A DNA stretch of 64,000 nucleotides from Phaeosaccion multiseriatum (Eukaryota > Protista > Ochrophyta, other classes), in the NCBI GenBank assembly GCA_965112735.1, contig OZ218964.1, forward strand, positions 682,001 to 746,000, given 5' to 3'. The notes beneath the pieces were generated by a model. It did no database searches. It saw only the letters and a program-made list of their open reading frames with translations, and was not told where the DNA came from. The number at the start of each line of letters is the position of its first letter. Positions within the stretch are counted from its first letter, which is position 1. The translations under genes and the position numbers were made by a program. This document shows positions 2,003-64,000 of the stretch, one piece after another.

Positions 2003-2044
<42 letters not shown>

Positions 2045-2501
2045 GAGTTTAGTTTCAGTATAGTAGACCATGCCCAATACCAGACACCCTCCAGCCAAGC
2101 GATTCGACATCCATGTCGATATCGAATGCTCCCTTCTGTGGCCAACTCACCTGTGCGTTGATGTTGATGTTTGCCAAGCTACTCAAACTCAAACTGCCCC
2201 CCCCGCGGCTGCTGCTGCTGCTGGCGCCGCCATCTATATTGCCGTGCTGGTTGCCATTGCCGCTGCTGCTGCCCTCCCTCCCCACCACAAGGGTGTGTAG
2301 AAGGGCGTACTGTGCGGCGCTAGTGTCCTGAAACTCATCCACCAGAATGTGGCGGATGCGCCAGCGGTATCTGCTCAGTATCTGTTTGTGATGGAGAAAA
2401 GATCGAATGTGCTCTTGAGAGAAATGGATCGAGAGGGAGCTCAGCCGAGCATGCAAAGCGACTACTGCACCTCTAGAGCCTAGATACGCACACACTACGA
2501 C

Positions 2502-2565
<64 letters not shown>

Positions 2566-2568
2566 CAC

Positions 2569-2610
<42 letters not shown>

Positions 2611-5536: not shown

Positions 5537-6127
5537 CGTCGTGCCTCTGCCTCGGTATCGGCCCCGTGCACGCCTAGCGGCCTAGGCCTATTTTGGAAAA
5601 TTGCCCGGCCTAGCGAGGGCCGTAGGCCCTCGGCCTATTTATAGGCCGCCTAGGCAGCGGCCTAGGCGGCGGCCTAGGGCAGACGCCAACTAGGCGCAGG
5701 TCCAGGGTGGGAATATGCTCATATGCCCCTGGGCTGGCCCGGAACCCGCCCAAGTGTCGTCAGTTTTAAGCAAATGTATTGCATGGGATAAGTGAGGAGT
5801 AGACTTGGTTCGTGTTGTCTCCTCGCTGGCCCTACGAGGAGTGCAGGCCTACAGGTGTGCTGCTACCCACTGACTGGGCGGCACCACGCACGCGCCCACG
5901 GGTCACTGGGAGGCTGCCTAGAGGCGGATTAGCTAGCTATAGGCCGCCTAGGGCTGAAAAGTGAGCGGCCTAGAGCCTAGGCCGCTAGGCGTGCACGGGG
6001 CCGATCGGTATGATCTTGTAGGATGCGCTGTTGATGATGAGGTTGTGTTTCGCGACGTAGAAGTGATGGCTGCACCTCATCATCAACAGCGCATCCTACA
6101 AGATCGTACCAAAGCAGAGGCACGACG
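5537..6127. repeat. Fold-back (long inverted repeat) element whose left arm is split by MITE A
   Basis: Perfect 32-bp arms at 6012-6043 and 6075-6106. Pairing continues through 6107-6127 (gtaccaaagcagaggcacgacg) with 5537-5558 (cgtcgtgcctctgcctcggtat), on the other side of the MITE. Confidence 0.8.
5559..6003. mobile_element. Non-autonomous DNA transposon (MITE family A), 445 bp, hAT-like 8-bp target duplication
   Basis: Perfect 29-bp TIRs cggccccgtgcacgcctagcggcctaggc / gcctaggccgctaggcgtgcacggggccg. Flanks ctcggtat (5551-5558) and atcggtat (6004-6011). Subterminal cctagg/taggccg repeats; no ORF. Confidence 0.85.
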
Positions 6128-6229
6128 GCACTCTGTTCGGCGACCACGTGACCAACACCAAGACGGTCAAAGAGGAGAGGAGCGGCGCTGACGACGACGA
6201 CGTCGACGACTGGGCCCGGAGCGCAGTCT

Positions 6230-6428
6230 TCGACCCCTGACACACTATCGCCCACATTCTCGATAGCGCGCTATCGATAGCGGATAGCGTGCCGGCTGGC
6301 GCCGGCGATAGCGGATAGCGCGCCGGCTGGCGCCGGCCGATAGCGGATAGCGCTGGCGCCGGCGATAGCGGATAGCGCGCCGGCTGGCGCCGGCGATAGC
6401 GGATAGCGGATAGTGTGTCAGGGGTCGA
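6230..6428. mobile_element. MITE family B copy 1 (199 bp, 20-bp TIR, 6-bp TSD)
   Basis: TIRs tcgacccctgacacactatc / gatagtgtgtcaggggtcga; TSD cagtct at 6224-6229 and 6429-6434. Interior is a tandem array of ~29-bp gatagcggatagcgcgccggctggcgccggc units. Confidence 0.85.
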
Positions 6429-7334
6429 CAGTCTCGCAGCTGCCGCCCCCCTTTCACTTGTCAACTTGAACACGAATTGCCCGAATTTGCGTTCAAAATG
6501 TACCGGCCATCTGGCGTAGCGTGTGTGAAACTCAAATTAAAAAAAAAAAATGAGTTTGGTTCCTACAGCGATCGTACGGGAGGCTGCCCACGTTCACAAG
6601 AGGAAGAGTACTTTCGCACAAATTTCTCTGGTTGGCTTAACCCTGCCTCGGGCAGGAGCTCCTCGCTCTTGAAAGCGATGGTCTTCCAACGGTGCAATTG
6701 CAATTAGTTTTTGTGGACTGAGAGTCCGCTCTCGGCGCCGAGCGTCGACCGCTTCCCAGGTGCGTCGTTTGCAGAGAAGGTACGCGCAGGATCCATTTAG
6801 AGGAGGGGCGATGCATCGATAAGTGTTGGTAAAGGCTCGGTAGGAATGGGTCAGGGGGTGGAAGAGCGCCGGACAGGAGCCGGGGAAACTGAGGCAAACT
6901 GCTGTCTCTCTTTCGTGGTGCGGATCACGCCTTGGGGGGGCATGTGCGTGTGATCGGTTTAAAGCGGCCGCAGGAGGGACTCACAATAGCTGCACAGGAG
7001 CTCTGTGGGGGAGGGGGGGGCAAAGGACGATTCGGAGCATGGAGTGAAGAGAAGAGAGAGAGTAAAACGGACGTTGGGGAAGTTTTCATCGGCCTCCACC
7101 CACCCCCTCTCACCCGTCCCTCCCCCTCCAACTGCTCCCTTGTCCCCCCGCCCACACCCAACAGCAGCAGCGATGAGGGGATGCGGGAACGTGCGGAGGC
7201 GCAGGCGCAGCAGCAGCAGCAGCAACCGGGCAGAGGGAGATGTTCCTCAAGAGGGCCGACATGGGCGGCATTGCAGCGGCACGAGCTCCAGCCATAGCCA
7301 CAGCGGCAGGGCCGCCAGCTCCAGCAGCAATGCT

Positions 7335-9614
7335 ATGCAGCTCTTTCGCACACTACAGCTGTGCACCCTGCCCATCCTCATTGCCTTGCAAGCCGTCCAC
7401 ACCGCCACGGCTGGAGCCAACCCCCACCTCCACGTAACGGCGCATGTTGGGGAACAAGAGGCAGCGACGAGCATCGCCGGCCGTGCGGACAGGAGCCTCA
7501 AGCGGCAGCGGCCGTTGAGCAGGGACCACCAGCGGCAGCGGCACCTTGGGCTGAGGCAATGCGCCTTTGCGCTGCCCATGCCCCGCTCAGCCGCAGTAGC
7601 ATGGCCATCCTCCACGACGTCGAGGTCAAGGGCAGCAGCGTTACCCATCGCCCCGGCCGTATCGATTGGCATGTTGCCCTGTAGGCATGAGCAGCGCCCG
7701 CGTAGCGGAGGAGTGGCTCTGGATGCGATTGTCATTGGCCGTCGCTCTGGGGAGAGGTCCAGAGGGAGAAGGGGAAGCAGCGGCCGAGAACTTGCCAAGA
7801 ACGTCCCCCCAGGACTGGCCAAGAAAGTCCAGGGCTTGCTCTTCGGGGGGGGGAACCCCAGAAAGAAAAGCCCGAGGGAGAAAGAGGAAGCAGCAGCCGC
7901 CGCAGCAGCAACAGCAGTACTAGCAGCAGCAGCAGCAAGAGGCGCCTCGTTCGCGGAGAAAGAGGCCCAGCGAGCTCAAGCGCGAAGAGCGCTGTACAAG
8001 GATATGACTCTCTTGCCCCTCCTGGTGCAGTCCGTCATCATGGGCCAGCAGGTCAAGGAAGAGCAGTGGCGGGGCCTCAGGCTCTTCTTCCGCGCCGCGT
8101 CGGAGTCCTTCATGGAACGCGTGGAGACAGACGCGGCCAAGCTGCTGTTGCTGGGGCAAGACGATGATGGCAGCAACGACAGCAGCAGCAGCAGCAGCAG
8201 CGGCAGCAGCAGCGGCAGCGACAGCAGCAGCAGCAGCAACGACAACAGCAGCAGTAGTGTCAGCTATGGCATGTCTGCCGTAGGCACGGCACCCCCGCCC
8301 ACAAGTCTCACCACCATCACGGGGGATCAAGGGGTTGGTGGGCCGTTTGGGAGCCCGTTTAGCAGTCTCTTTTCGACCCTGTTTGGAGACTTTGACTTGA
8401 ACAAAATCTTTCCTTCCACCGCCGGGCCCGGCGGAGCGGACAGCCGACCGAGGGTGCAGGTGCTGGACAACGGACGCGCGGCCACACTCCTGGGGGGCAG
8501 GGAGGTGGGAAGCCTGAGGCGGCAGGCCAGCCTGGAAAAGAAGCCGGCCATGACCGTGGTGGTGCGGTGGCTCTTTGTTGCCATGATCAAGCGGACGGCC
8601 AAGCAATGGGACAACCTGCGCGTGAGCGTGCGCGCCAAGGGCAATCTGCAGGCCCTGAGTGGCAACCTGCAGAGGGTCACCTTCGACTGGGACCGTCTCG
8701 TCATGCCGCAGTGGCAGTGTACGGGGGGCGGACACGTGTCAGTCACGGGGGTGGACCTCAAGGTGATGCGGCTGCCGTGGCAAAAGTTTCGGGCCTTTCG
8801 CAAACCTTTCGAGGTGTACGGGAGCATGCATTTTCGCGATGAGGACCTCAACCGTTCCCCCTTGGTCAAGCAGCTCCTGCAGAGGGTGCTGGAGGCCGGC
8901 TTTCAGAAGCTCAAGACCGTCAAGGGGAACCTCTCTACCACCCTGCCGGGCAGCGAGAGAGAGAAGGGCAAGGTGTTTGTCAAGCACGCGGGCATTTTGA
9001 AGGGGAAGCTTGATGTGCATGGTTTCATCGAGTACGGGGGGGAGACGGAGACATCGAGTAGCAGTAGCGCAGACAGCCTCGAGTTGCGGCGGAGCATCAA
9101 CCAGAGGGAGAGTAGGCGAAGCAGCAGCAGTCGGAGGCTCAAGACTCAGCGGCGTCAGATCGGCATCGGCAGTAACAACAGCAACAGCAGCAGCAGTGGC
9201 AGCGGTAGTGGTAGCAGCACCAACACGCGATCGTCGTTTCGGCGCCAGCCCTTCAATTTCCGCTCCGTCTTGTGCACCAAGAAGAACGGACATGTGATGG
9301 AGCTTGGCGAGTCGGAGCTGTTTTACGAGTCGCTGAGTATGCTCAACATTCCCCTCAACCCCTTGGACAAGGTGTTTGATGTGGACATTGGGGACAACGC
9401 CCGTATTGAGCGCATCGCCATCGAGGGGGATGTGCTGCACCTTCAGTACCGAGTTGTCTTGTCTCCCTTGCCCAAGCGCGTCATTGGTGGGCTCAGCAAG
9501 CGGGCGGTCTTCCTGTTTGATGTCAGCGCGAGGCTGTCGGTGTGCTTCGGCCGCATGCTGGACAACCGACTAGGGCTGCACTTTTGGGGGAGGAAGAAGG
9601 TGGGGGCAGTGTAA
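7335..9614 (+). CDS. Intronless DUF2993/LmeA-like (putative phospholipid-binding) protein with an N-terminal signal peptide, probably plastid-targeted
   Basis: Single long ORF (7005-9614). ATG 7335 gives a hydrophobic signal (MQLFRTLQLCTLPILIALQAVHTATA); alternative ATG at 7173. Segment WDNLRVSVRAKGNLQALSGNLQRVTF...FRKPFEVYGSMHFRDEDLNRSPLVKQLL resembles cyanobacterial/plastid DUF2993 proteins. Confidence 0.65.
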   Translation: MQLFRTLQLCTLPILIALQAVHTATAGANPHLHVTAHVGEQEAATSIAGRADRSLKRQRPLSRDHQRQRHLGLRQCAFALPMPRSAAVAWPSSTTSRSRAAALPIAPAVSIGMLPCRHEQRPRSGGVALDAIVIGRRSGERSRGRRGSSGRELAKNVPPGLAKKVQGLLFGGGNPRKKSPREKEEAAAAAAATAVLAAAAARGASFAEKEAQRAQARRALYKDMTLLPLLVQSVIMGQQVKEEQWRGLRLFFRAASESFMERVETDAAKLLLLGQDDDGSNDSSSSSSSGSSSGSDSSSSSNDNSSSSVSYGMSAVGTAPPPTSLTTITGDQGVGGPFGSPFSSLFSTLFGDFDLNKIFPSTAGPGGADSRPRVQVLDNGRAATLLGGREVGSLRRQASLEKKPAMTVVVRWLFVAMIKRTAKQWDNLRVSVRAKGNLQALSGNLQRVTFDWDRLVMPQWQCTGGGHVSVTGVDLKVMRLPWQKFRAFRKPFEVYGSMHFRDEDLNRSPLVKQLLQRVLEAGFQKLKTVKGNLSTTLPGSEREKGKVFVKHAGILKGKLDVHGFIEYGGETETSSSSSADSLELRRSINQRESRRSSSSRRLKTQRRQIGIGSNNSNSSSSGSGSGSSTNTRSSFRRQPFNFRSVLCTKKNGHVMELGESELFYESLSMLNIPLNPLDKVFDVDIGDNARIERIAIEGDVLHLQYRVVLSPLPKRVIGGLSKRAVFLFDVSARLSVCFGRMLDNRLGLHFWGRKKVGAV

Positions 9615-47783: not shown

Positions 47784-50001
47784 ATGGAGGAGCTGGAGGG
47801 AGGTGCGGCCATGGAGGAGGTGGAGGGCAGCGTCTTCAAGCAGCTGCACGAGAGGTGAGCAGAGGAGCAGAGGGATGGGGATGGGGTGCCGTGGTTTGGC
47901 CCGCGGGAGAGGAGGGAGAGCAACCGGAAGTGGAGTGGTGTGTTGCTTCGAGAACGTCTCGGGCCCGTTAGTCTATCCTAACCCCGGGCCCCCTCCCCTC
48001 CCCTCCCCCCAAACAAACTTGCCCAAAACACCCAAACAAACCCAAAACAAACATAACCAATCAACCACGTGAAGAAACGTGCGGCCCTGGTTAGACCTCG
48101 TAGACGAGCTCCGGTCCCATGGCGTATCCGAGGACATCCCCTTACCGCAGATCGCAGTCATGGGCGACCAGTCCTGCGGCAAGTCTTCCGTGCTGGAGGC
48201 CATCTCGGGTGTGCCCTTTCCTCGCGGGTCCGGCCTGGTGACGCGCTGTGCCACGCAGTTGGTGATGAAGAGCGGGCCGCCCGGTTCAGAGTGGAGTGCG
48301 CATGCTACTGTGATGAAGGGAGCAGCAAGCGGGAGTGGAACCGCGGGAGGAGGAGGAGGAGGAGGGGGTAAAGACGCAGCCACTGCCGTTTCCGTTTCAT
48401 CTCCAGCGGCGCTGACGAAGGTGATTTCTGATCTGCAGGACTCTCTGACGGGAGGTAGTCAGACCTCCTTCAGCACGGACACCATCCTTATTCAGGTGCA
48501 GGCTGAGGGCCTTCCCGACCTCACCCTCATCGATCTGCCAGGTAAGCAGGTGGGGTTCGTGAGTGTGTGCGTGCATGCGTGCGTGCGTGGGTGGGTGGGT
48601 GGGTGGGTGCGTAGGTGGGCCCTAAACTAGACTCAAACAACTCGAACTCAAACTGGTGTTGGTGTGGGATGTTGCGTCTTCGCGTGTTGCTTGTCCTGTT
48701 GGTCTCGGTCGTCGCCAGGCATTGTGCGCACGGCCACAGCGGGACAGAAGGCCTCCGTGATGGGCGAAGTCAACGCCCTCATCGACACCTACCTCGGGCA
48801 GGAGCGCACGATCATCCTGGCCGTCGTGCCTGCCAATCAGGTGGGTAGCTGGGGTGGGGTAGGGTGGGCGGTGGGGTGGGGTAGGGAAAGTGCACACACA
48901 TGCCTACCACTGGAGAGTGGGGTCTTGGACACGTGTGTAACTCACTCCCTTACTCCTTCTCTCTCCCTCCCTCCCTCCATCCATCCATCCCGCCCCTCCC
49001 CGCTCCCTCCCTCCCTCCCTCCCCTCCTCCCTCCCTCCCTCCCGTCCTCAGGACGTTGCCACGGTAGACATTCTAGAACGGGCAAAGGCGGTCGACCCCC
49101 AGGGGGACCGCACCATCGGAGTCCTCACCAAGCCCGATCTCATCGGGCCCGGGAACGAGGAGGAGGCCCTTACCGTGCTCAGGAACGTTCGAAAGCCCCT
49201 CAAACTGGGCTATGTGATGGTCAAGTGTCGCAGTCAGACGGAGATCAACGCCGGGGTGTCTAATCGAGAAGCAGTGGTGGAGGAGGCACGCTTCTTCCGC
49301 CAGCATTCGTGTTTCAGTGCGCTGCCCGCGTCTCTGACAGGGGTGGCCACGCTCACCACGAGGCTGACGGAACTGCTCGTGAGGAGGATTGAGGCAGCCA
49401 TGCCGAGCATCAAGGTGAGTGAGATGATGATTGGTCAAATCATCTTGGAGTGAGAGAAAAGCTTTTTTGTCTCTGAGCCTGCTTTACCTTACCGCCTCGC
49501 CTACCGCTTGGTATTGTTGTTGATGATGAGGATGTTGCTGTTGTTGTTGGTGTCGTTGTTGTTGTTATTGCTTTTTGTTCTTTCTCTCCCTCTTTCTTTG
49601 CTGACTCAAGTCAAGTCAGTGAAGCATACTCTGTGGTGTGGTGCTTAGGTTTGTTTTTAGTGTAACTTTTCAGTCCCTTTGACAATCATGTCCCTGACCA
49701 CCCCCTTTCGCCTCCATTCCCTCCTCCTCCTCCCCTCCCCCCTCCAGTGGGAGATCCAGCAGCAGATGCTGGAGACAGAAAAGCTTCTGCAGCCGATGGT
49801 GAAAGGGGTCCCGCAGGACGAGGCCGAGTGCCAGACCTGTCTCATGAAGGTATGTTCACGGCATCCTTACGTAGGCTACCAGCATCCTTATGTAAGGTTA
49901 TGTAAGGTAGTATCATCCCTTTTATTTCATTTACAATTTGGACTTTTCCAAAGCTGTGTTTTGTTGAGTTAAGGTCACCTAAACTGAAACTATATGTCTG
50001 T

Positions 50002-50032
<31 letters not shown>

Positions 50033-52909
50033 TGTCATGAATTCATGAAGGTGGTTTCCGAGTACTCGCGTCTCCTCAGGCAGAGCGCAAGAGGCTATTA
50101 TCGGGACGATGTGCTCAGTGCCAGGCCTGCACTTCGCCTCCACGCCGAGTGTCAGCTCATATTCAGGTAGCGAGAAAGGGGGGAGGAGGAGGAGGAGGAG
50201 GAGGAGGAGGAGGTGATTTTCTTCCATTCACTGCGTGTCCCCCTCCCGATCCATTGCCATCCCCCGTGCCTTTGCTGATGCCCCCCCCCGCCCGCCTGCC
50301 CTCTCTCCCTCCCCGACAGACAACTCCACCGCAACATAGCGGCCACCATCCCGGGCTTCAATGATAACGGCTTTGGGGAACGTCTGGCGCTCGAGATGCA
50401 GGCCCTTCGAGGGAAGGAGATGCCCGGCTTCCTCAACCATCAGGTCTGTGAGTGAGTGAGTGAGTGAGTGAGTGAGTGAGTGAGTGAGGGAGGGAGGGAG
50501 GGAGGGAGGGAGGGAGGGAGTGGGCGAGGAGTGGATGGTGGGTGATGATAGAGAGAGAGCCAAAGAGAGAGGGTGAGAGAGGGATGGGTGGTGAGAAGAG
50601 GGAGGGAAGAGGGAGGGAGGGAGGGAGGGAGAGTGAGGGATTGGAAGAGGAAGAGGAATGGACGGGGGGGGGGGGAGAGTAAGGGAAGGAGAGTTCAGAC
50701 AGACAGAGAGAGAGAGGAGGGGTGGTGATGGGATGGGTGATGGGATGGGTGAGAGAGGGTTGGAGAGAGAGAAAGAGAGAAGGGGGGAGGGGAGAGGGGG
50801 AGAGGGGGAGAGGGGGAGGGAGAGAGAGAGGGAGGGAGAGAGAGCGGGAGAGTGGGGAAGTGAGTCACAGGTGAGGGAGTGATGGTGATGATTTGGCATG
50901 TCGGTAAGACTATGAGCTGATAAGGGGCTAATAACTTCCATCCTGAACTTGAACTTGAACCTCAGGTGTTCTACGGTTTCATGATCCAGAACGTGGAGTC
51001 CTGGAGACCCGCCGTGGAGGTGTGCCGCTCCACGGCCGCCAACGCCACTCTGACTGTCGCGAGTCTGCTCATTGACACTCTCGCTGTGCAGTTCCCGAGG
51101 CTGTGTGGAGCCGTAAGAGATGCCCTGAGTGGTATTGTGGAGACACGCGCCGAGGAGGTGAGGAGTATGGGGAGAAAGGTGGGGTGGGGTGGGGGTGGGG
51201 TGGGTGAGGGCTGGGTGCGTGGGTGTGTGGGGAGGTACAGACGTGGGGGAGTGCTTTGAACACTTACGTAAGAAAGTACGAAAGTATGTAAGTTTATCTT
51301 CCTAGCGTCGTGTTCCAGGCGTCTTGCGCGGTGTGCTTGACGGTGCGTCCCACTCCCTCTCCCATCTGCTGCCATCCCCCCCCTCCAAGGTAAGCGTCCG
51401 CATCGACGAGATCTTCCAGAAGGAGAGCGACCCCTTCACCACCAACGAGGGCATGCTCGAGGTCATCAACACCATACGCTTCAGGCACTTTGACAAGGTA
51501 CTCATTCCACTTACGTCTCACTAAGCACTCATTCCACTTAAGTCTCACTACACTCACGGCACTCACTATTCTCAAATACACTCTAAGTACACTTAAGTAT
51601 CAGTGCCAGTGCAGTAGTACATTCACTCTGTGCAGTCAAAGAGTCACTGCTGTCACTTAGTTAGTCAGTCAGTCAGTCAGGCGAGGCGAAGGAGGGCCTG
51701 GTCACTGAACTCGGCACCCTCCCCTCTTAACCCCTCCGGGGGTGGGTCTTGGCGCTACCCGTGTGCTGCTGTATCACCAACTGCTGCTGTACCACCAACT
51801 GCTATCCACTGCCATCCCCCAGGCCTTGGAGGATGCCATGGATGCTGCTGGGGAGGAGCACGAGAGTATGGCGGACCTCAAGGCCTCTGTGCAGGACAAG
51901 CTCGGCGCGTGGTATATGAGGTAGGAAGGGAAGTACAAGGTGTCAGGCTGGCTTCGTCCTTCGTCCTTCCTTCACAGTGTGGTGATTCACAGTGTATCAG
52001 GACTGTGCCAAGTGTGATTTGCCGTGCTGGTTGGTTGGTTGGTTGGTTGGTTGCTTAGGTGATTGATGTGTTGGTTGGTTGGTTGATTGATTAATCACTC
52101 TGTGCCCTCCGCTGCCATCTCTGCTATTCTGTGTAGGAACCACGGCGTGGGCACGATGGCGAACGTGGAGGACATGTGCACCCTCCTGCAGGCGTATTGG
52201 AACGTCGCCACTAAGCGCCTCGTCGATAACGTGTGCATGACCATGGAGCAGGTCAGTAAGTCAGTACGTACCTGGTGTCAAGCAGTCAGGCAGGCAGTCA
52301 GTCAGTCAGTCAGTCAGGCAGTCAGTCAGTCAGTCCGTCGGTCCTCGCACCTCCCTCCCCGTATTACCAACACCCACAGGATTTCGTGGTGCATCTCCTG
52401 AGTGATGTGGAGAGCGAATTGTTCCTGCTCACCAACAGGGAGGGGGGAATCGAGGAGCTCTTCGTTGAGGACACAAGCGTCATTGAGGTAAGCGTGTGTA
52501 TCACCAACGTGTATGTTTGTGTGTGCGGATGCATGTGTGTGTGTGAGTGTGGGTGTGTGTATCTGTGTGTGTGCGTGTGCGTGTGTGTGGTTGGTTTGTG
52601 TGTTTGTATGAATCTGTGCGTGTGTGTGTGTGTATGTGTACGTACCTGCCTGCCCAATGCCCTTCTACCAGCGTGCCCATATGCCTTTCCATGCCCCTAC
52701 GCCCGCCCACCTGCCTGCCTGCCCATACGCCTGCCCGCCGTACGACCGGATGGCTCTGCCCCTGAGCAGAAGCGCAGGAGCCTGCAGGCCAAGTACAAGC
52801 GTCTCGGCAAAGGGCTCGAGGCCCTCATGCTCAAGGCTCCAGGCATTGTCGCCGAGAGGCCCAAGTCGGTGCAGTGGCAGGTAAGTGGGAGGGGGGAAGG
52901 GCGAGACAA

Positions 52910-52954
<45 letters not shown>

Positions 52955-53162
52955 AGTGGGGGGGTGTTCGTTCGCTGGCAGTGGTTGTGGGTCCAGGAAG
53001 GAAGGGAGGGAAGGAAAAAGAAGAAAGTGGAGCACAGCTGTGGCGTCCCTGCCTTCGCTTACCCCGCCTTATTCCCTCACCCCGCCCCCCTCCTCTTTCT
53101 GCCTCACCCCCCGATCCTCCTTCCCTTCGCCCCTCTTCCCTCTCTCCTCTCTGTCGCTCTCC

Positions 53163-53193
<31 letters not shown>

Positions 53194-55448
53194 TGCCTCT
53201 TCTCTCTCTCCCCCTCGCTCTCTCCCCTCTCCCTCAACCCCCCCCCCCTCTCCCTCTTGTCCAGGACGGTTTCGATGACGACGCTTTGCAAGAGGCGCGT
53301 GTTGCTGCCCTAAGCCTGGGCGGTGCGGCGCAGGAGGAGGCAAAGGTGGGTACAGCAGTAGCAGCAGTTGGTGATACGACAGCTCACAAACTAGCCTTCA
53401 CTCATCACACACACGACTTGTCTCGCTTTCCATCCCTCCTTTCCTCCTGCAGGCAGCAGAGGCGGAGCTGAGCAACCGTTTCTCCAGCAAGTCCCTCATG
53501 GAGGCGGCTGAAGAGAGGTCCCAAAGCTCCAAGTGGGGGGCAACAACATGGGCCCGATCCAAGCCTGTGACGACGATGCATGCAGACCCCGCTCCGGGCT
53601 TTGGGTCAGGGGTGGGAGGGGGGGGAGGAGGAGGAGGAGAGTATCAAGACCATTACAACCTTCCAGTGAGGTGAGGAGCACAGTTGAGCAAAGCATGCTT
53701 TCTTAGAGATGGGGTGATGTGCTGTGTGTGTTTGTGTGTGTGTGTGTGTGTTTGTGTTTGTGTGTGTGTGTTTGTTTGTGTGTGTGTGTTTGAGTATGTG
53801 TGTGGGTGTGAAGTACTGTGTGAGCCGAGACGTCTCGCTCTTCTCTCTCTCGGTCTCTCCCTCCTTTTCTCCCTCTCTCCACTTCTCTCTCCCTCTCTCT
53901 CTCGCTCTTCTTCTCTCTCTCGGTCTCTCCCTCCTTTTCTCCCTCTCTCCACTTCTCTCTCCCTCTCTCTCTCGCTCTTCTTCTCTCTCTCGGTCTCTCC
54001 CTCCTTTTCTCCCTCTCTCCACTTCTCTCTCCCTCTCTCTCTCGCTCTTCTCTCTCTCGGTCTCTCCCTCCTTTTCTCCCTCTCTCCACTTCTCTCTCCC
54101 TCTCTCTCTCGCTCTTCTTCTCTCTCTCGGTCTCTCCCTCCTTTTCTCCCTCTCTCCACTTCTCTCCCTCTCTCTCTCGGTCTGTCACTCTCCCTCTTTC
54201 TTCTCTCCTTCTCTTCCTCTTTCCGCCTCTCTCTCCCTTCGTCTTTCTTTGGGCTTATGTGTACTCATGTGATTGAAGTGGGGGGAGGGATCGAAAGACG
54301 AAAGACGAAAGACGAAAGAGAGGAAAATAGAACCCGGCCTCCTCTCCTCGCGGAGGGAAGGAACAACGGAAGGAACGAAGGAAGGAAGGAAGGAAGGAAC
54401 GAAGGAAGGGAGGACGGAAGGAAGGAAGGAAGGAAGGAAGGAAGGAAAGAAGGAAGGAACGAAGGAAGGAACGAAGGAAGGTGGTGGTCATTGTGGCTCG
54501 CTGCTCACCCCCAGTGCGGAACAGCAAGAGGATGGCACTCTCTCTGCTTTCTCTCGCTGCGCATGGCTTGCTGCTCACCTTCCTCTCCGCTCACCTCCTT
54601 CCGACAGGCCACAGCAAATGCAGCGTCTCTCTTCTGCTCAACAGCAGCAACCACAGCCCGCTCTTCCTCCGCCACAGCAGCAGCAGCAGCAGCAGCAGTT
54701 GGTGATACAGCCGGAGGGGAATGAGACGAATGTGCTCGTGGAGCGGCTGGTGGACCTGGGCTTCCCACGGAGCAAAGTCATCGACGCGCTTGCAAAGTGC
54801 GACAACAACCCTGACTTGGCTGCAGAGAGGCTCATGACCGAAAGCTTGGGGGGCGAGGGAGGGGGGGGGGGGGCAGCATCCGGGGCGGGGAGCAAGGAGG
54901 ATGGCAATAGCAGCAGCAGTAGCGGCAGGCGAAAAAAGGCGAGCAGCAGCATCAGCAACACGAGCAGAGCCCTCCCAGCGGACTTTGCTCAGCAGGCCTC
55001 CAATCCAGCGGCAGCTTCCAAATCGAGACCCGGGGGGGGAGGAGGGGCCTCCTCTGCCTCCTCTCTCTCCGCTTCTTCCCCATCAAGGGCCGCCGACTCC
55101 GAGCAGCAGCAGCAGCAGCGCCTCTTTCTCGACGCACAAGCCAAGCAGAAGCAATACAGCGAAGATGCCGAGCTGGCAGCCTTCTTGGCGGCCGGAGAGG
55201 GAGAAGACAAGGGTCGGGGAGCCGCTGGAGGGGCTTCTCCTGTGGGGGTGGGGGCGGGGTCAGGGGGGGGGTCAGGGGGGGGGGGGTATGAGAGAGGTGC
55301 GCGGGACAGCAGCAAGTACACCAGTTTGTTCGGGGAGGACACCGCTGCTCCGAATGGCGACGGTGGGAGAGGCACCAACATGACCACCACCACCAGCAGC
55401 AGCAGCAACAGCAACAAGGGAAAGCGCTCTCTCTTTGACGACGCTTAA
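47784..55448 (+). CDS. Mx-like dynamin-related GTPase with a C-terminal UBA domain
   Basis: 16 exons: 47784-47854, 48075-48541, 48719-48840, 49052-49414, 49748-49849, 50051-50166, 50320-50443, 50966-51157, 51390-51497, 51823-51920, 52137-52251, 52380-52487, 52770-52880, 53265-53345, 53453-53670, 54608-55448. G1 [30 protein letters not shown]3 DLPG, G4 [14 protein letters not shown], stalk [11 protein letters not shown]-like [17 protein letters not shown]: [29 protein letters not shown]. The last three exons are less certain. Confidence 0.85.
53830..54181. repeat. ~70-bp CT-rich minisatellite x5, intronic
   Basis: cggtctctccctccttttctccctctctccacttc recurs at 53851, 53921, 53991, 54058 and 54128. 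Confidence 0.9.
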
Positions 55449-56535
55449 CATTCCTCAGCCCTGACATTATGCCTTGGCTGCAAGCCGATCGATTCACATG
55501 CATCCTACAATAGGCCCACAATAGGCCCACAATAGGCCCACAGGGTGAGGTGTAAGAGCGTGGTACCAGTGGTACTTTTGTAAAATGAACGAGTCAAGAG
55601 GTGTGCTGTTGAGGGATGCCTCCCTACCTCCCTTCCTTCCTTCCTTCCTCCCTTCCTGCCGGCCGCATGTCAAGTGTCATAACTTCTGATTTGGTTGGTC
55701 ATTACCGAGAGATGTCACCATCAACACAAGCATCATTATATGTATTAGTAAGTAAGTTTAGGTTTCTCTTCCACACAGCAAATTCGTTATTCGTAATCCT
55801 CTCTATACTTTGCACAGCACAGCACAGCACAGCACAGCACAGCACAGCAGTTGGTGATACAGCACCGCACAGCTCAAGGCCTGAGATGAGGTGCACATGT
55901 CGAGCAGGCCTCTCCTCCGCTCCGCTCCAAGCCTTGCAATGCCTGCTACTCCACTCTCTCCTTTTCCTCCTCCTCCTCCTCCTCCTCCTCCTCCTCCTCC
56001 TTCTCCTCCTCCTCCTCCTCCTTCTCCTCCTCTGTTGTTCTTTTCCCCTTTTCCCTTCCTCATATTTTTATATAAAAATGTACTTCCTCGTTCTTCCTGC
56101 CCCAAGGCGAGGGTAAGCCGTGCGAGTAAGGCAAACAGAGCCTCTCTTCTCTTCTCCACCCCCCACCCTTCGTCTTCCCCTTCCCTCCTGACTCGCTCGT
56201 GCAGCGGGGCCGCAAAAGCAGAGCCCTATGGCCCTCTCTTCCTCCCTCACTCTCTCCCCTTCCCTCTCCCTCCCTCCTTCTCCCCTCCCTCCCTCCCTCC
56301 CTCCCTCCCTCCATCGCTCGGTGCTTCTCCTGATGACAAACGAAGAGGCACATGCCGCTTTGACTGGTGACTGGCAACACGTGTCTGCCGTCGGCCTTTC
56401 CACCGTACGACGCCTTCTCTTCCTCTTCCTCTCCACCGTGGACACGGCTTCAATCCCTCACTTCAACCCCTCCTGGCGTACAATGGGTGTCCCCAACACC
56501 CAACACCCAACACCTTGGCTGACTGATCTGATGAC

Positions 56536-59500
56536 TCACGAAGTCTGCTGCACCACCGGCACCGGCAGCTCTTTCTTGTTGCGGCTCGGTTCCTCCAGGG
56601 CCTTGACCTTCTTCGGCTTCTTACCGCCACCTCCCTTGCCCCCCTTTCCCTTGCCGCCGCTCCCCAACGCTGTCGTCACATGATTGGACGATGAGGAGGG
56701 CAGTGAGGGGAGGGCCGGGGAGGAGGGTAGTGCGAGCTGTGGTGGCCTGGGCAATGATGGAGGAGCCCCCTCACCGCCGTCACTGCCGCTGCCGCTTCCA
56801 ATATCACTACCACTGCCCAGAGGAGGGGGCGGTGGGTCGGAGGAGGAGGAGGAGGAGGAGGAGGTGCTCGCGGTGTTGTCATTGTTGTTGTTGGTGATGG
56901 TGTTGGTGCTTGTGTAGCCCTCCAAAAGAGGAATTGCATTGTCTCCGAGACAAACGTACACATCCTCGTCATCACTGTACGCGCGATTCAGACCCTGTGT
57001 GGTGTGGCGTGGTGAGGGGTGGGGAGAGAGCGCATGACGGGAGTGACAGACAGGACAACAACACGGGAACATGGGAAGGGGGTAAGTGTGACTACAGGCA
57101 CGCACACACGCCTTCTCGCACGCACACACACGCCTTCACGCACTCACGCCCACATACACACACGCACACACCCACGCACACACACACACGTACGCACATA
57201 CACGCACGCATGCACACACACACTTGCCTGATTGAGGTATGCGATATCCTTGTCAGAGAAGACCCCGAGCTGGGCAGTGCGCAACACTGCAACGAGGTCC
57301 TTACCGAACGCCAGGCTGTCCATGTCTCTGTTGAGGCGAAAAGCAACAGCAACAGGCCAGCAAAAGGAATGAGGTAGGACACAACACGTCGGAGGTACAG
57401 GTGCGTGGGAAGGCATGAGAAGGGAGCGAAGGGAGGGCGAGGGCAGAGCAGCCAAGAGAGTCACAAAGGCAGCGACAAGAGAGAGAGAGAGGGGGGGAGG
57501 GGGGGGGCACGCAGAAGCCCGAGAGAAGGTTAGGGACAACCAAGTTGGGAGTCTCCTTGCGCCTCTCGACAAACAAGTAAACCACCAGCCTCAAACTCCA
57601 ATGGACCCGACTGACCTGTTGCGCAAGTTCCGGGCAAAGCCGCTGAAGCCCGTGAGCACGCCGATCTTGTCTCGCTCCGTCGCGTCAGTGCGCAGGTGAA
57701 GCGCTGTCTCCGCCCCCGCCGTGCACCACAACCAGCTCATCTGTGTCAGCACCTTGCCCCACAGGAACGAGTAGGATGGAGCACCACCCCCCGACATATC
57801 CCCACCGGCCCCGTCCCCTCCAAAGTGGTTATACACGTCATCGTCGCCGTCGCCATATCCGCCGTAACCGCCGTAACCGTCACGCCCCCCCCCCTCGGCC
57901 TCGTACTGATCGGACAGCGGCAAGTTGTTGTTACCGTTCTCGAAGGATGCGGTGGGGCTATCTGGCCGCTGCTGCTGCGCTTGGTCCCGGAGAGTGAGGA
58001 GTTGATTGAGCCTCGAGGTGAGGGTCGAGCTCCCTCGGGGCCGATGCAAGAGACAGAACAGGGCCTTCTTGCCGCTGCCGCTACCGCTGCGAACGTTGTG
58101 GCGGGGCTGCTGCATCACCAAGTGCTCCCCATCCTGACTCTGACCTTGACCACCGCCCGCGCTCTCCACCTCACCGCAGTCTCCGGCCAGCCCTGCCTGA
58201 AGAGCGCAGGTCACGTGCATGTAGATTCCGCAGCCGTCGACAGAGCAGCGAGAACAGCCACTCCCTCCCCGAGAGCAGAGGCAGCACCTCGGCCCTTCGT
58301 CGTCAGCCTGTGTCACCAACTGCTGCTGCTGCTCCTGGTGCTGCTGCTGTTGCTGCTGCCCGCCGCTGAAGTAGGAATTCGAGCTCAGGGGGGTGAGAAG
58401 AGAGGACCTCTCTCCGTCCGTGGCAGACACAACCTTTGAATCGTCCTCCGCGCCTCCACACCCACCAGTCGTCGCCGAGAGGGATGCGAGCTTCTCCCTT
58501 GAGGCCCAGCTCAAGCAGATACCGTGTGCCCAGCGCGGCCCCTCACGAGGGTTGCGGGACGAGAGGCGTCGCAGGGACCCCGTCCGGCAAGGGCACAGGC
58601 AGCAGAAGGGCTCCACAGAGGGCTCCGACCTACTGGAAGTCAAACTCAAACTCGACCCAGCAGCGGCTGCTGGTGATACAGCAGCGGTAGTTGGTGCTAC
58701 AGCCGTAGTCGCAGTCCTGTGAGCTCTGTTGCTGTTGTTGTCGTTGTTGTCGTTCTCTGCACCACCGCCGCCCAGGTGATGGTTGGAGGAGGAACGCTCG
58801 CGTCGCCACAGACACACATCACACAAGAACGGGGGCAAGGCAGACAGAGGGGGCAAATCGGCCGAGCCAGAATAACGGCCGGCTGTCCCATTGGACCCAT
58901 TGCCATTCACAGCAGGGGCGGCGAAGGAGGCGGCTACCCCTGTCCCCCTCCACGCTGACGAGCTGCAGCACATCTCGTAGCAGATCCAGTGCACAAACAC
59001 AGAGCAACCCGCGCACTTCCACAAGCCTCGCGTGTCTCCTCCCTCGCACACGTCGCACACATGCCCTCTGAGCTCCACATTATCAACCCTTGCCCGAGGG
59101 TCTTCCCGCATCGCAACAATGTCATCGTCGTCGTAGAACTCGTTCTTCGCGACGACAGCGCCTCCCGTCATGCCTCTTGTTGTCTCTTCCTCCTGTCCCT
59201 CCTCTCGCCCTCGCTCCTGCTGCCCTCGCTGAGGCCCATCTCGCGGCTGGCATACTAGCGTGGCGCCGTTGTTGATGTTGTTGCTGCGACCTTTACTGCT
59301 GCCACTGCTGATGCTGCTGCTGCTGCTCCTCCTCCCGCCCATAGACTTGAGCTGCTGCTTTGACCTTGCCCGCTGCTGCTGGTGGCAGGCGTACGGGCTC
59401 ATGGGCTTCGCAATCTCATGATACATATCCTCCCCCCCCCCAGCTTCAAAGGCCCACTCCCTTTGTCTTGCTTCCTCCCTTGCCTTCCTCTTTCCTCTGC

Positions 59501-59895
59501 GTGCGTAGTCCTCGCTCTCGTCGCTCTCCCCTGCCGCCGTGGCCGCTGCTGCTGCTGCCGCCGCCGCCGCTGCCTTGAACCCAAGCACCATAGAGGCCGA
59601 TTCTCCGGGGAGCGTCTCCTCCCTCCCAGCCTCCCGACCACCACCAAGCCATTCACCACGGCGAGCGCCGCCAGACCCCGTCCTCCCAAAGCCCCTCCTG
59701 CCCCCTTCCGTGTCCTCTTCCTCGCATCGTAAAGAGTGCTCTTCCTCCCCTTCGCTCCATTCTCTGTCCCGCTCCTGCTGCCTCTCTTCCCTTCTCTCGT
59801 CATATCTGCCTGAGGTGTCCGCCTGCTCATCACGGTATAATCCGTCGCGCCGCTGCGCACCGCTGAAATCGCAGTTGGGAGGGCACTTCCCCCTA

Positions 59896-59927
<32 letters not shown>

Positions 59928-62900
59928 GGTACCCGTCTCCTCAGCCCCATACTCCCAGGCCTCGGTCCGGGCTGTTGCAGTCGCCTTGTTCTTCTTTTCA
60001 ATGGCATGCCTGGGACACAGAGCCACCCACGTGTCCGGATTGTTTCTGTCGGGCATGCTCAAGGCGGCCCCCCCACCTTTCGCGCAAGTGACGTGGAAGC
60101 AGGCGCAACATTCGTTGCACTGGACGAGCCCCCCCTCTCCTCTAACGCAAAACACACACTTCCTCGAGGAGCGAGGAGCTCCCCCCCCGCCCCCCCCTCC
60201 GGAAGCGCGTGAGCCCGAGCCGGCTGTTCCTCCTCCTCCTCCTCCTCCTCCTCCTCCCCCTCCTCCTCCTCCTCCTCCTCCTCCTCCTCCCCCTCCTCCT
60301 GCTGCTGCTCCTGCAAACCCCACTCCTCCGTCATGGCCAGAGCCAGCGCCGCTGCCTCCTCCTCCTCTTCCAAACAGCTTATCCATGAGAGCGGCAGCGG
60401 CAGCAGAGTCACTTCGTTGGCGCTCCAGAAACGCCCTCACCGCCACCTCACCCCCCTCCTTCACCTCCAGCCCCTGCCACACGGCACATATGACGTGGCA
60501 CCAGGTATCGGGACCGAGATCGGTGGCAGAGAAGGCGCCCCCATAGCCTGGGCACAGGACGCAAGTGAGATCGTGCCTTCCTCGCTCGCCCACAGGAGGC
60601 GGAGCAGAGGAGGAGTAATGCGGGCTGAGCCCACTGCTGCCCGATAGATGGCTTCGGCCTCCAAGACTCGCAATGTCGCCAGTCTCGCTTCCGTTGTCGC
60701 TGTTGCTGCTGTTCCCAACCCCCCCCTGGCCTCCTCCCGCTCCTCGACCTAGTCCCTTCCACCCTCCGTACCCGCCGCCCCTCTCCCCATCCAGACTGCT
60801 GCAGCTCCGGCTACGATGCTCGTCCCCCTCCACGCTGGTCACCCCCATGTCGTCATCGTTGTGGTGATTATGGTGACTATGGTGGTGGTGGTCGTCATGG
60901 TGATGGTGATGGTACAGATTGGCCTGGCCGTCACTCGCCTCCGCTGCCCCTGGCTGCTGTATCTCCAACGGCTTGTCCCGTGTATCCAAGCTGGATGCTC
61001 GGCCAACAATGCCACGGGCACATGGATTACAAAACCAATCGCCCAGAGGAAGCTCCGCCAACCCGTAGCAGCTCTGATGCACTGCCACGTCGCATCGCTC
61101 ACAAAACACAATGTTATCCACGTGCGACACCTCCCCCCCACCGCAGACGTAGCAGTTGGTGTCCATATCCTCCTCCACCTTCTTGAGCCAAGCAAGGCGC
61201 TCATTCCTTGCCCGCTCCATGACTTCTTCCCACCGCTTCAGCGCGTCGGCATCCTCTGCTTCCTTCTGCTCGCGAGCTCCCGAACAGTCGTACTCTGTCT
61301 CCGCCTGCACCCTCCTCAGGAGCACCTCCCTGGCGGCGCCGCTGGCTGAAAGTAGTCGGTGGAGCTCCGCTTTCTCTCTCTGAATCACTGCGCCGAGCTC
61401 GCCAGAGTCCTCCTCCTCCTCCTCCCCCCCCGCCTCTCCTGTCGCATTTGCAGTTTCGTCGAACTCTCCTTCGTCCTCCTCCTCCTCTCTCACACCTCCA
61501 CAGCCATTGATCACCGTCCCCGCCTCTGCATGTGCACCCCCCTCCCAACAGTCGCTGCTGCCGTGCCGTTTTGGCGATGCTGCACATGCTTGCTTCCTTG
61601 CAGCCTCCGCCCTAGCCCCAGCCTCACCCAACGGCGATGATTGTGGCTCTATCCAAGCCTGAAGAACGTCCAACGACCACACAATGGCAGCCGTAGTCGC
61701 AGCGGCAGGTGGTGGGAACAGCCCCTTCCTCTCCTTCTCTCCCGCCCAAGCCCCCGCCGCGGCGAGGCTGGCCTTCCTCTTGACTCCAGGACTCCTTGTC
61801 GACTTCCGAGCCGGGCTACTGCTGTTCATGCTCCTGCTGCTGTTAGTGCTACTGCCGCCGGACTTGGTGGGCGTGGAGGGGAGAGGCCGGACCCCTTCTG
61901 CACTCCTCGACAATGATGGTGATGGTGCTGATGCTGATGATGATGATGACGAGGAGGAGGAGGTTGATGATGTAGCCCTCGCCGCGCCGCCGTGCCCCCG
62001 GCTGCTGCAGCCACAAGGGGGTGAACACCCGGGAGGCGAGCACGCCCCCTCCCCCAGACCGGCTGTCTCCCCACACACGTCCTTCATCTCACCCCCATCC
62101 ACTACCATCTCACCATCCAGGATCCTCGCACGCAGGGAAAAAGCCTTCTTCAGCTTGCAATTGGTAAAGACGTCCTGCCGCCGCTGGGTGGGGGACAGCT
62201 GCTGCTGCTTCATGTTCCACCGCTTCCTCTTCTTGGAGACACTCCCTGTCCCGCCTGCCCCTACCATCCCCTCCGGCTGCGTCTTGCTTCTACTGCTTGG
62301 GTCATGGAGAAAGCGGCAAACGGTTCGCACCACTGCCACGTGGTCGCCCTCCTTCTCCTCCTTCTCCCCCCCTTTCTTCTCCTTTTTCTTCCTCTTCTTC
62401 TTCTTCGCCTCCTTCTCCTCCTCCTCCTCCTCCTCTTCCTCCTCGTCCTTCTCCTTCTGCTGCTCCTCCTCCTGCTCTCCAACCTCCAGCCCGGCAGCAG
62501 CAGAAGCGTCTGACCTGCTGGCTGCTTCCTGTTGGCGCCTCCCTGCCCGCCTGGACTCTCGACTTGGCTCAACGGAGTCGCAGCAGTCTCCTCCTGCCCC
62601 ACTCAGCACACCCCGAGAACAAGAGTGACGAAAGGCTGCCCTTGCCGCGGCCGCTGCCGCTGCTGCCATTCCCCCCAGGAATCCGTACGAGCCTTCTGAC
62701 ACCGGTGCTGCTGACTGGAGAGCAGCAGCAGGAGGCGGCGTGGAAGGAGTAGACGCGATGGTACGCTTCCTCGGGTCCTTTGCACCAGCACCAGTGCCGG
62801 CCCCGTCGGCTTCTGTGGTGGTACTGCTGTCTCCCCGCCCACCACGGGTATGGGCATCACCTTGCACTCTCGAGGTGGTACCGGTGCCGGTGGCCCACCG

Positions 62901-63665
62901 GAGAGTAGAGGGGGAAGCGCTGCCTCTGCCACTGCTACTGTCTCCTGTCCTACCGCTGGACGATGACGAGGGCCGTCGACGCCGCCTTGAGCTAGAGATA
63001 GGAGATCGGTGGGAGGCGATGAATCTATCAACGCCAGAGATGGGCGGGGGGAGTATCCCACTGCTTTTGTGGCTGCTGCTGCTCGTGGGTACCCCGCTGG
63101 CCCCCGCTGCAGCTCTGGCTACTCTTGCGCCCCCCTTGTCGGCAGCAACAGTCATCAAGGCGTCCAGCAGAGCTTGCCGTCCCTGCTGGGACTTGGGGAT
63201 CATCAAGGCGTCTAGCAGGGAGGTTGCCTGCTGGAGGGAGGGCACGGGGCTAAAGTATCTGTCCCCCACGCTCCTCCAGTCCAGCTGCAATGCCCTCTTG
63301 CCCCCCTCGTGCTGAGGGGCGTCTTCTTCTCGGAACAGCGCCATCACCGTCACGTCCTCAGCAGTAGCACCATTGCTGCCACCATTCCTACTCCTCTTAC
63401 CCTTCTTACTGAGTCCACTGCCGTGGCTGCTGCTGCCGCTGGCAGAAGCGTTGTTGCTCCCGAAGCTGCCGCTGGATGAAGTCGACCGCTGCTTCTTCCC
63501 TTTCCCCTTGCTCTTCCCCTTACACTTCCCTTTTCTCCTCGTCACGTGCTGCTGGTGATGGGAGCCACGACCTCCAGCCTCCACATCGCTGAAGGCCTCC
63601 ATCCCGCTGCCGCCAGCCAAGGCGCTTGGGGGGAGGGCAGAAGGGCACCTGCCAGGGCTGCCCAT
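56536..63665 (-). CDS. PHD-finger chromatin reader with two PZP (PHD - Zn knuckle - ePHD) modules, JADE/BRPF/Nto1/Snt2-like (~2200 aa)
   Basis: Exons (minus): 63665-57616 (6-kb exon), 57327-57228, 56994-56536; second intron GC-AG; 3' end tentative. PHD CYVCGGGE...IVFCERCDVAVHQSCYGL...WFCNPC; CVLCPGYGGAF..WCHVIC; CVFC..QCNECCACFHVTC..LCPRH. Second set: CDVC..KCAGCSVFVHWICY..LCDVC, CCLCP..WAHGIC, CCLC..CSVDGCGIYMHVTC..FCLLH. Confidence 0.85.
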
Positions 63666-64000
63666 CTCTCTCCTCCAAACTCGGCTGTTACGGCACACCA
63701 GCCCACGCAGCAGTACCCATGGGAGCTCCTGAGTTGGTCCTGCCTTCCTCTCCCACCATGAGCTGCAGGTTCCTGCTATTGCGGCGGCTCCTCTTACAAA
63801 TATAAAGCACGGGCAAGGGAGCTGCGGCCCGGACCCGGGGGGGCCTACCCCCTTGTTGCTTTCCTGCTCCAAAACCTCGCTTTGCTTTGCTTTGCCTCTT
63901 TCATAGCAGTGTTATTGTAATCAGTGGGGTGGGTGGGAGGAGCCGGGTGGCAGGTAGGACGGCAGCGCAGCAGCGGGGCAGCGTAGCATATAAATTTTTT

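Follow-up and report, generated by a model that had tools for sequence, protein, structure and literature searches.

Does a dynamin-family GTPase of the alga Phaeosaccion multiseriatum run on, across three introns, into a tail with a ubiquitin-associated (UBA) domain, or do two neighbouring genes lie end to end, and what would such a tail be for? The question is raised by a gene at 47784-55448, on the + strand, of a 64,000-nucleotide stretch of contig OZ218964.1 (GenBank assembly GCA_965112735.1, positions 682,001 to 746,000; C15:682001-746000 in our numbering of the host genome), referred to here as the window. The host genome is intron-rich, has a guanine-plus-cytosine (GC) content of ~60% and amounts to 67 Mb in 22 contigs. 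Taken together, the analysis makes it likely that the locus is one gene, encoding an Mx-type GTPase with a conserved UBA-bearing tail that would be targeted to ubiquitin-marked sites. The gene model has 16 exons, all on the + strand, with 3258 coding bases including the stop codon, and predicts a protein of ~1085 residues; all 15 introns are GT-AG, the phases are consistent, and no internal stop appears when each exon, together with its split codon, is translated separately. Exon limits were set from splice signals and ortholog alignments, and all searches were run exon by exon on the window gene.

The dynamin part was identified in Pfam scans and in searches against solved structures. Exon 2 (48075-48541), encoding the first half of the GTPase domain, matches Dynamin_N at 8.1e-18, and exon 4 (49052-49414), with the end of the GTPase domain, the Mx-type motif LGYVMVKCR and the start of the stalk, matches Dynamin_M at 6.2e-23; exon 3 (48719-48840) also belongs to the GTPase domain (Dynamin_N positions 116-140) and is 70-88% identical in orthologs. 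The GED match, on exon 11, reaches only 0.015, because this domain is divided over exons 11-13; the unsplit ortholog exon on contigs L008 and L017, introduced below, gives a match recorded as 'GED (weak)'. The marks of a dynamin-superfamily GTPase all stand at the expected places: G1 GDQSCGKSS (48163-48189) and the G2 Thr in LVTRC (48235-48249), both in exon 2, G3 DLPG (48532-48543), which has a codon split between exons 2 and 3, and G4 TKPD (49127-49138) in exon 4. The sequence-only reading of this DNA had assigned the protein to the Mx type and noted the lack of a PH domain, and the searches agree on both points. Against solved structures, exon 2 finds Mx1 as its best match (8.6e-26; next family 1e-10), exon 4 finds Mx2 and Mx1 (1.6e-25), and an uninterrupted 211-residue ortholog fragment from contig L016 finds Mx at 1.3e-39 versus 3.4e-33 for dynamin-3. 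Mx1 and Mx2 thus lie closer than dynamin, Vps1, Drp1 or Opa1, heading each of the three PDB searches with a margin of 6 to 15 orders of magnitude, the Mx matches ranging from 1e-25 to 1e-39 and those to dynamin, Vps1 and Drp1 from 1e-10 to 1e-33. The Pfam scans gave no PH match on any exon, and there is no proline-rich domain. By these comparisons the gene is predicted to encode an Mx-type dynamin-family GTPase with GTPase domain, bundle signalling element (BSE) and stalk/GED.

Vertebrate Mx1/MxA and Mx2/MxB share with the window protein the GTPase-BSE-stalk layout, the lack of a PH or proline-rich domain and the ..GY.MVKCR.. motif, but Mx proteins stop soon beyond their final GED helix, whereas the window protein continues for ~375 mostly disordered residues that include the UBA. 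In order, this tail comprises an acidic helix, an SS.W motif, a DHYN.PV motif, a polyglutamine run, a RAD23-type UBA and two LF motifs. Its first exon, T1 (53265-53345), has a strong acceptor and donor and encodes an acidic and then Ala-rich segment that is probably helical; T2 (53453-53670) encodes the conserved AE.R..SS.W and DHYNLPV motifs and a Gly run, and is homologous to exon B of contig L010 and to exons T2a/T2b of contig L012; and T3 (54608-55448) encodes the polyglutamine run (54675-54698), the UBA (54735-54836), a disordered Ser/Gly-rich stretch, TSLFGED (55320-55340) and the C-terminal SLFDDA (55428-55445), followed by the stop. The pieces named in the sequence-only reading, namely LGYVMVKCR (49205-49231), RGKEMPGF (50408-50431), TSLFGED and SLFDDA, were all located by position where it had placed them.

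The UBA, likewise first recognised at this place in the sequence-only reading, is borne out by a Pfam hidden Markov model match (PF00627, 54738-54833, in open reading frame 54606-55445) of 2.8e-10 and 40.3 bits, above the curated cut-off of 22.4, and is the best UBA match in the host genome; no paralog of the tail was found in that genome. Aligned with its orthologs and with RAD23-type UBAs, the domain keeps every invariant column (G, NN, A, L). A predicted model of 56 residues is a three-helix bundle (helices 5-19, 23-32 and 37-50) with a mean confidence score (pLDDT) of 77.5 and block means of 81-89 across residues 11-50. In a Foldseek search of the PDB the top folds were all UBAs, with probabilities up to 0.99 and root-mean-square deviations (rmsd) of 1.5-2.1 Å, at E values of at least 0.18 that are not significant, the domain having only ~45 residues; the model lies at 1.6-2.2 Å rmsd from the ubiquitin-bound UBAs of Ede1, Cbl-b and EDD. 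Structural look-alikes of the tail in the ESM Atlas were generic UBA clusters only, all with scores <0.8. The closest known counterpart is the internal UBA (UBA1) of RAD23/hHR23A, alike in Pfam family, three-helix bundle, G-F loop and NNPD motif, with library matches of 32-47% identity; in contrast to RAD23, the window protein has no ubiquitin-like (UBL) domain, XPC-binding domain or second UBA, and carries its UBA in the tail of a large GTPase.

The remaining proposals for the tail fared unequally. Both LF motifs recur at the same positions in the orthologs on L008 and L010, as AGLFGE and a terminal GLFG, and their acidic flanks are not kept there (few or no acidic residues). In the window they resemble the tandem, retromer-binding LFa (LF-acidic) repeats of FAM21 in having Leu-Phe followed by acidic residues; FAM21 carries about twenty such repeats, whereas the window protein has two LF motifs only, so that the likeness to a retromer ligand consists in two short motifs. 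Two segments described as resembling ubiquitin-interacting motifs (UIMs) were abandoned: neither gives a Pfam UIM match even at E<=1, and the key Ser is misplaced with respect to the UIM pattern, in which an acidic run precedes hydrophobic-x-x-Ala-x-x-x-Ser-x-x-acidic. In T1 this Ser lies two positions too far along, and the orthologous exon (..AEMKARFEEAALLAQ) is without a UIM pattern; the first segment is kept as D..DD.A...AR in one lineage only, where the UIM positions are lost, and nothing in the other lineage visibly corresponds to the second.

To place the gene in other lineages, the tail was searched with HMMER against 1.84 billion proteins. The top two matches are synthetic His-tagged tandem-UBA constructs and the remainder mostly RAD23-like, the sole true ortholog fragment being P0011, of 79 residues, on contig L008; its 'M' is a TTG start assigned by the gene finder. 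The two constructs, P0001 and P0002, are four-fold tandem UBAs (TUBE-like) whose misleadingly good E values put them at the top of UBA searches. P0064, on contig L009, was discarded as an ortholog, its UBA exon lying beside DNA-polymerase subunit genes with no dynamin upstream. Contig L008 (5.7 kb, GC 42%) is 67% identical to the window in dynamin exon 4, 80% in exon 6 and 88% in exons 9 and 11, and its UBA exon follows the GED at a distance of 1.3 kb, on the same strand. A word search returned P0067, which lies on L010, a metagenome contig of 48 kb with the gene in full, and a profile search with exon 9 yielded further orthologous exons on contigs L011-L018. L017 (GC 42%) and L018 are relatives of L008; L011-L015 (GC 49-55%, exon 9 97-100% identical) make up a second ortholog lineage, and L016 (an NCBI assembly, GC 43%, with fewer introns) a third. 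Tail exons lie directly downstream of the dynamin, on the same strand, in L008, L010 and L017 and in L011-L014 (GC 52-55%), with exon 9 88-100% identical, and L016 has weaker T2-like motifs in the exon after the GED. The tail features seen across lineages are the acidic/Ala-rich T1, SS.W..(T/A)W, [DG]HY..P[VI], polyglutamine, the UBA, LFGE and a C-terminal LF.

The fusion was judged by comparison with these other genomes. Three junctions join the dynamin to the UBA, and all had been proposed from the sequence-only reading: 52880/53265 (CAG/GTAAGT donor, pyrimidine tract and CAG/G acceptor, the slash marking the splice), 53345/53453 (AAG/GTGGGT donor, ..CCTGCAG/G acceptor) and 53670/54608 (GAG/GTGAGG donor, ..CCGACAG/G acceptor). 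They have canonical GT..AG ends, pyrimidine tracts and compatible phases, and stand as proposed; one correction concerns the start of exon 13, which lies at 52770 (KRRSLQ...) and not further upstream. Exons 12 (52380-52487) and 13 (52770-52880) encode the last GED/BSE helix, orthologs reading ..VEKRR[AS]LQAK.. across their junction, and exon 13 ends in a GTAAGT donor with no stop. Low-complexity DNA gives many chance GT/AG pairs, and independent evidence for the junctions was therefore required; third-position GC by itself does not decide whether T1 and T2 are coding. Such evidence comes from intron positions, which differ among the four lineages, so that each disputed window junction is continuous coding sequence elsewhere. 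Where the window reads ..SVQWQ/DGFDDD from exon 13 into T1, the intron of L016 interrupts the sequence four residues before that point (..AEKP / S), after which SQWEDV..ED.. is read without a break. For T1 and T2, exon B of L008/L010 has the T1-like ..AR...AALL.. followed by the T2-like AE.R..SS.W (..AALLSAAESRR.. in L008), and L012 divides the two pieces at exactly the same place as the window (..AALLAQ / AEGRSSSTDW). The T2/T3 junction, DHYNLPV/R/PQQ in the window, is found within single exons as DHYDLPVRPAQ (L012) and DHYNMPVRQQQ (L008). The UBA and LF tail occupies one exon in the window and two in L008/L010. Because each junction is continuous coding in the ortholog of another lineage, the junctions go beyond chance, and the phase-compatible extension into the tail that had been proposed is upheld.

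The DNA alignments point the same way. Between L008 and L010, and among L011, L012 and L013, the predicted exons are ~90% conserved and conservation is lost or much reduced in the introns; its onset is the acceptor AG, which precedes the earliest ATG of exon B by ~70 bases; a 3-base indel preserves the frame, and the split Arg codon varies synonymously (AG/G versus AG/A). The splice from GED to tail is phase-compatible in all contigs examined, being phase 0 in the window and phase 2 in L008, L010, L011, L012, L013 and L016. Codon differences in the T1 exon among L011-L014 comprise 3-5 that are synonymous and none that is nonsynonymous, and the ratio of nonsynonymous to synonymous change (dN/dS) between L008 and L010 is approximately 0.08 (UBA exon), 0.14 (last exon), 0.15 (exon A) and 0.38 (exon B), with 0.03 for the GED. 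The tail exons are under purifying selection. On this comparative sequence evidence, a single gene joining dynamin and tail is very probable.

Several findings tell against a fused gene with a ubiquitin-directed tail. Among public sequencing runs, the locus was found in no RNA run and in four DNA runs of one sample, whose contigs read through the introns; apparent 'joints' in these four runs were rejected as splices, their sides being 19-24 bases within CAG/CTG-type repeats. The L016 bridge over the exon 13/T1 junction is short, with ~10 of 15 residues similar. No full-length fused protein occurs in the 1.84-billion-protein library, which may only reflect the lack of transcript-based gene models for these algae. 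The L011-L015 and L016 contigs stop before the UBA, and the UBA itself is seen in two lineages only, the window and L008/L010/L017. Finally, the UBA loop reads LGF in the window and MGF in most relatives, L008 and L010 among them, and ubiquitin binding by this UBA is predicted from family membership alone. The residual doubt about a single gene is due to the missing transcripts and the short L016 bridge, and the form it takes is that of two adjacent genes, with the dynamin ending in a retained intron (at 53469-53471 or at the TGA 53672-53674) and a separate UBA protein starting from an ATG at 54618 (..PQQMQRL..) or at 53498. In-frame stops just beyond the T1 and T2 donors, these two ATGs, splices unsupported by RNA and a compact genome, in which an upstream divergent open reading frame ends ~390 bases from the dynamin ATG, would all suit such an arrangement. 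It is nevertheless opposed by the UBA exons of L008 and L010, which have no in-frame ATG ahead of the fold and hence cannot open a gene, by the continuity of T2 with T3 in L008 and L012 and of T1 with T2 in L008, by the onset of exon conservation at acceptor sites, and by the absence of any Met conserved in T1 or T2 across lineages; a start at 53498 would, moreover, follow the dynamin stop at 53471 by 27 bases. Four lineages, with a GC content of 42 to 60% and with introns at differing places, retain the adjacency, the strand and the phase compatibility. Wider synteny is not conserved, which makes the kept dynamin-to-UBA adjacency more telling: L008 and L010 have a protein-kinase gene within ~500 bases after the dynamin-UBA gene (L008 5408-5653; L010 11289-12260), whereas the window has no kinase neighbour (55449-57590), its next large gene being convergent, on the minus strand at 57591-63872, with a Cys/His-rich open reading frame that looks PHD-finger-like by eye. 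With this balance we regard two separate genes as very improbable.

For the single fused gene, the mechanism we propose is that the GTPase/stalk part would self-assemble, oligomerising via its stalk, and hydrolyse GTP like Mx and dynamins. The flexible tail would tether this assembly, its UBA attaching to ubiquitin, or to chains of it, displayed by a membrane, an organelle or a viral structure and its LF motifs contacting a second partner, and the assembling GTPase would thereby concentrate on ubiquitin-marked targets. Long, flexible appendages with a UBA and two short linear motifs are of the sort that brings such an assembly to a marked surface. That the protein would be recruited to ubiquitylated membranes or virions, as the sequence-only reading had suggested, can reasonably be inferred, and among the roles open to the tail we favour recruitment by ubiquitin as the most likely, with slightly better than even confidence. 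Some UBA domains, however, bind UBLs, mediate dimerisation or autoinhibition, or protect from the proteasome, and the internal UBA domains of RAD23, the closest relatives of the one described here, also bind UBLs and serve as stabilisation signals. The fusion might thus be real and its UBA not a targeting receptor, but a domain that binds a UBL, dimerises or autoinhibits the GTPase, or shields it from the proteasome, and the LGF loop and the predicted status of ubiquitin binding would both be compatible with this. The conserved invariant columns, the fold shared with ubiquitin-bound Ede1, Cbl-b and EDD, the MGF retained in L008 and L010 and a dN/dS in the UBA exon that is the lowest in the tail argue the other way, and we consider a non-receptor UBA unlikely, a regulatory or UBL-binding UBA being nonetheless the chief alternative to recruitment by ubiquitin. 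What the targets would be is a separate matter. The protein could be a housekeeping remodeller in endosome function, autophagy or organelle turnover rather than an antiviral factor, 'Mx-like' then denoting ancestry only; Mx-like proteins are of ancient origin and occur widely, with a function that outside vertebrates is unknown (PMC11789081). In each of four lineages the gene persists as a single-copy ortholog subject to purifying selection, unlike the rapid turnover typical of immune genes; this fits housekeeping at least as well as immunity. Nothing stands directly against housekeeping, although the host genome has several Mx-like paralogs whose tails differ, a set that could also reflect diversified target recognition; we place this possibility just short of an even chance. 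Distinctly doubtful, by comparison with what the data call for, is a reading in which algal Mx-like GTPases form a modular family, a conserved intron directly behind the GED having let various target-recognition tails attach (a UBA in the window gene, a PDZ-like domain in the closest paralog), with the UBA form acting as an innate-defence effector on ubiquitin-coated viral factories or virions. If true, it would amount to a ubiquitin-guided, Mx-based antiviral system outside animals. Guanylate-binding proteins offer an analogy only: they are dynamin-superfamily GTPases that assemble on ubiquitin-marked pathogen compartments, but they belong to another family, have no UBA and are targeted via lipid anchors and other factors.

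Mx-like proteins have only recently been recognised across eukaryotes, in stramenopiles, haptophytes, cryptophytes and others, and fall into three lineages that include algal, fungal and plant forms (MxF, DRP4C; PMC11789081). Outside vertebrates, neither what they act on nor how they reach it is known. The window protein resembles the members of these lineages in being an Mx-like protein of a non-animal eukaryote. The text of PMC11789081 makes no mention of ubiquitin, UBA or PDZ, a full-text literature search returned no paper linking dynamin or Mx-like proteins with a UBA domain, and a UBA-tailed Mx-like dynamin is apparently undescribed so far. A conserved, predicted ubiquitin-binding tail would offer a concrete and testable targeting mechanism for one Mx-like protein. 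The locus also calls for some caution in annotation, with the UBA exon placed behind a repeat-filled intron of ~1 kb and prokaryote-style gene callers filing that exon as a free-standing small protein; one relative carries the source label 'RuvA-like'.

Other dynamins in the host genome bear on how such tails arise. In the closest paralog, L004 (G000:C14:2787000-2796999, ~6016-6632), the GED ends ..ANIQ at a GTCAGC donor, which is in phase 0 and takes the position behind the GED that the donor has in the window gene. In matching phase, a PDZ-like open reading frame begins at a strong acceptor (..CTTCTCCATAG/G) some 300 bases further on (PDZ_6 2.2e-5, 24.5 bits, just below the cut-off of 27). 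The C14 paralog thus appears, from its predicted splice, to have the same tail-after-GED design with another domain, and a UBA tail beside a PDZ-tailed paralog hints that tail swapping after the GED diversifies GTPase targets. A third Mx-like paralog, L006 (G000:C4:3746000-3755999, ~7960-8125), has an apparent stop right after the last GED helix (..KRQAKRSGQ). L007 (G000:C6:1155000-1161000) is a divergent dynamin of a different class, a nearly uninterrupted open reading frame of 660 residues at 1849-3831 with apparently one in-frame unspliced intron, and shares 38% identity with exon 4 along 73 residues.

The rest of the exon chain is regular. Exon 1 (47784-47854) holds the ATG at 47784 and the first BSE-helix residues (..FKQLHE), and ends in a GTGAGC donor whose phase 2 join to exon 2 gives Arg. 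Exons 5-11 (49748-49849, 50051-50166, 50320-50443, 50966-51178, 51390-51497, 51823-51920 and 52137-52251) encode the stalk and the beginning of the GED; they are 55-100% identical to the ortholog exons, all GT-AG and phase-consistent. Intron 5 (49850-50050) is flanked by the 10-base TCATGAAGGT at both junctions (49841-49851 and 50042-50052), and exons 5 and 6 are continuous, with no intron, in L008, L010, L011, L016 and L017. This intron looks like a recent gain with a target-site-like duplication; it was rejected as a repeated introner, being single-copy in the genome. Intron 15 (53671-54607; 937 bases) consists almost entirely of TG microsatellite, of a minisatellite whose unit measures ~135 bases and of an AAGG-type repeat, and no assembled Logan contig from the four public runs falls on 53637-54119. 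Its donor GTGAGG places an in-frame TGA right after T2 (donor and stop at 53671-53674), an arrangement (AG/GTGAG) that exon 1 has as well, and a transcript that keeps intron 15 would encode a dynamin in which T1 and T2 are present and the UBA is lacking, possibly a regulated isoform. Within the otherwise unalignable intron after exon A, L008 (3590-3612) and L010 (~9290-9310) share a conserved block of ~20 bases (ATCACA.A.TGACATGC), which lies 35-60 bases beyond the donor (columns 566-583 of the L008-L010 alignment).

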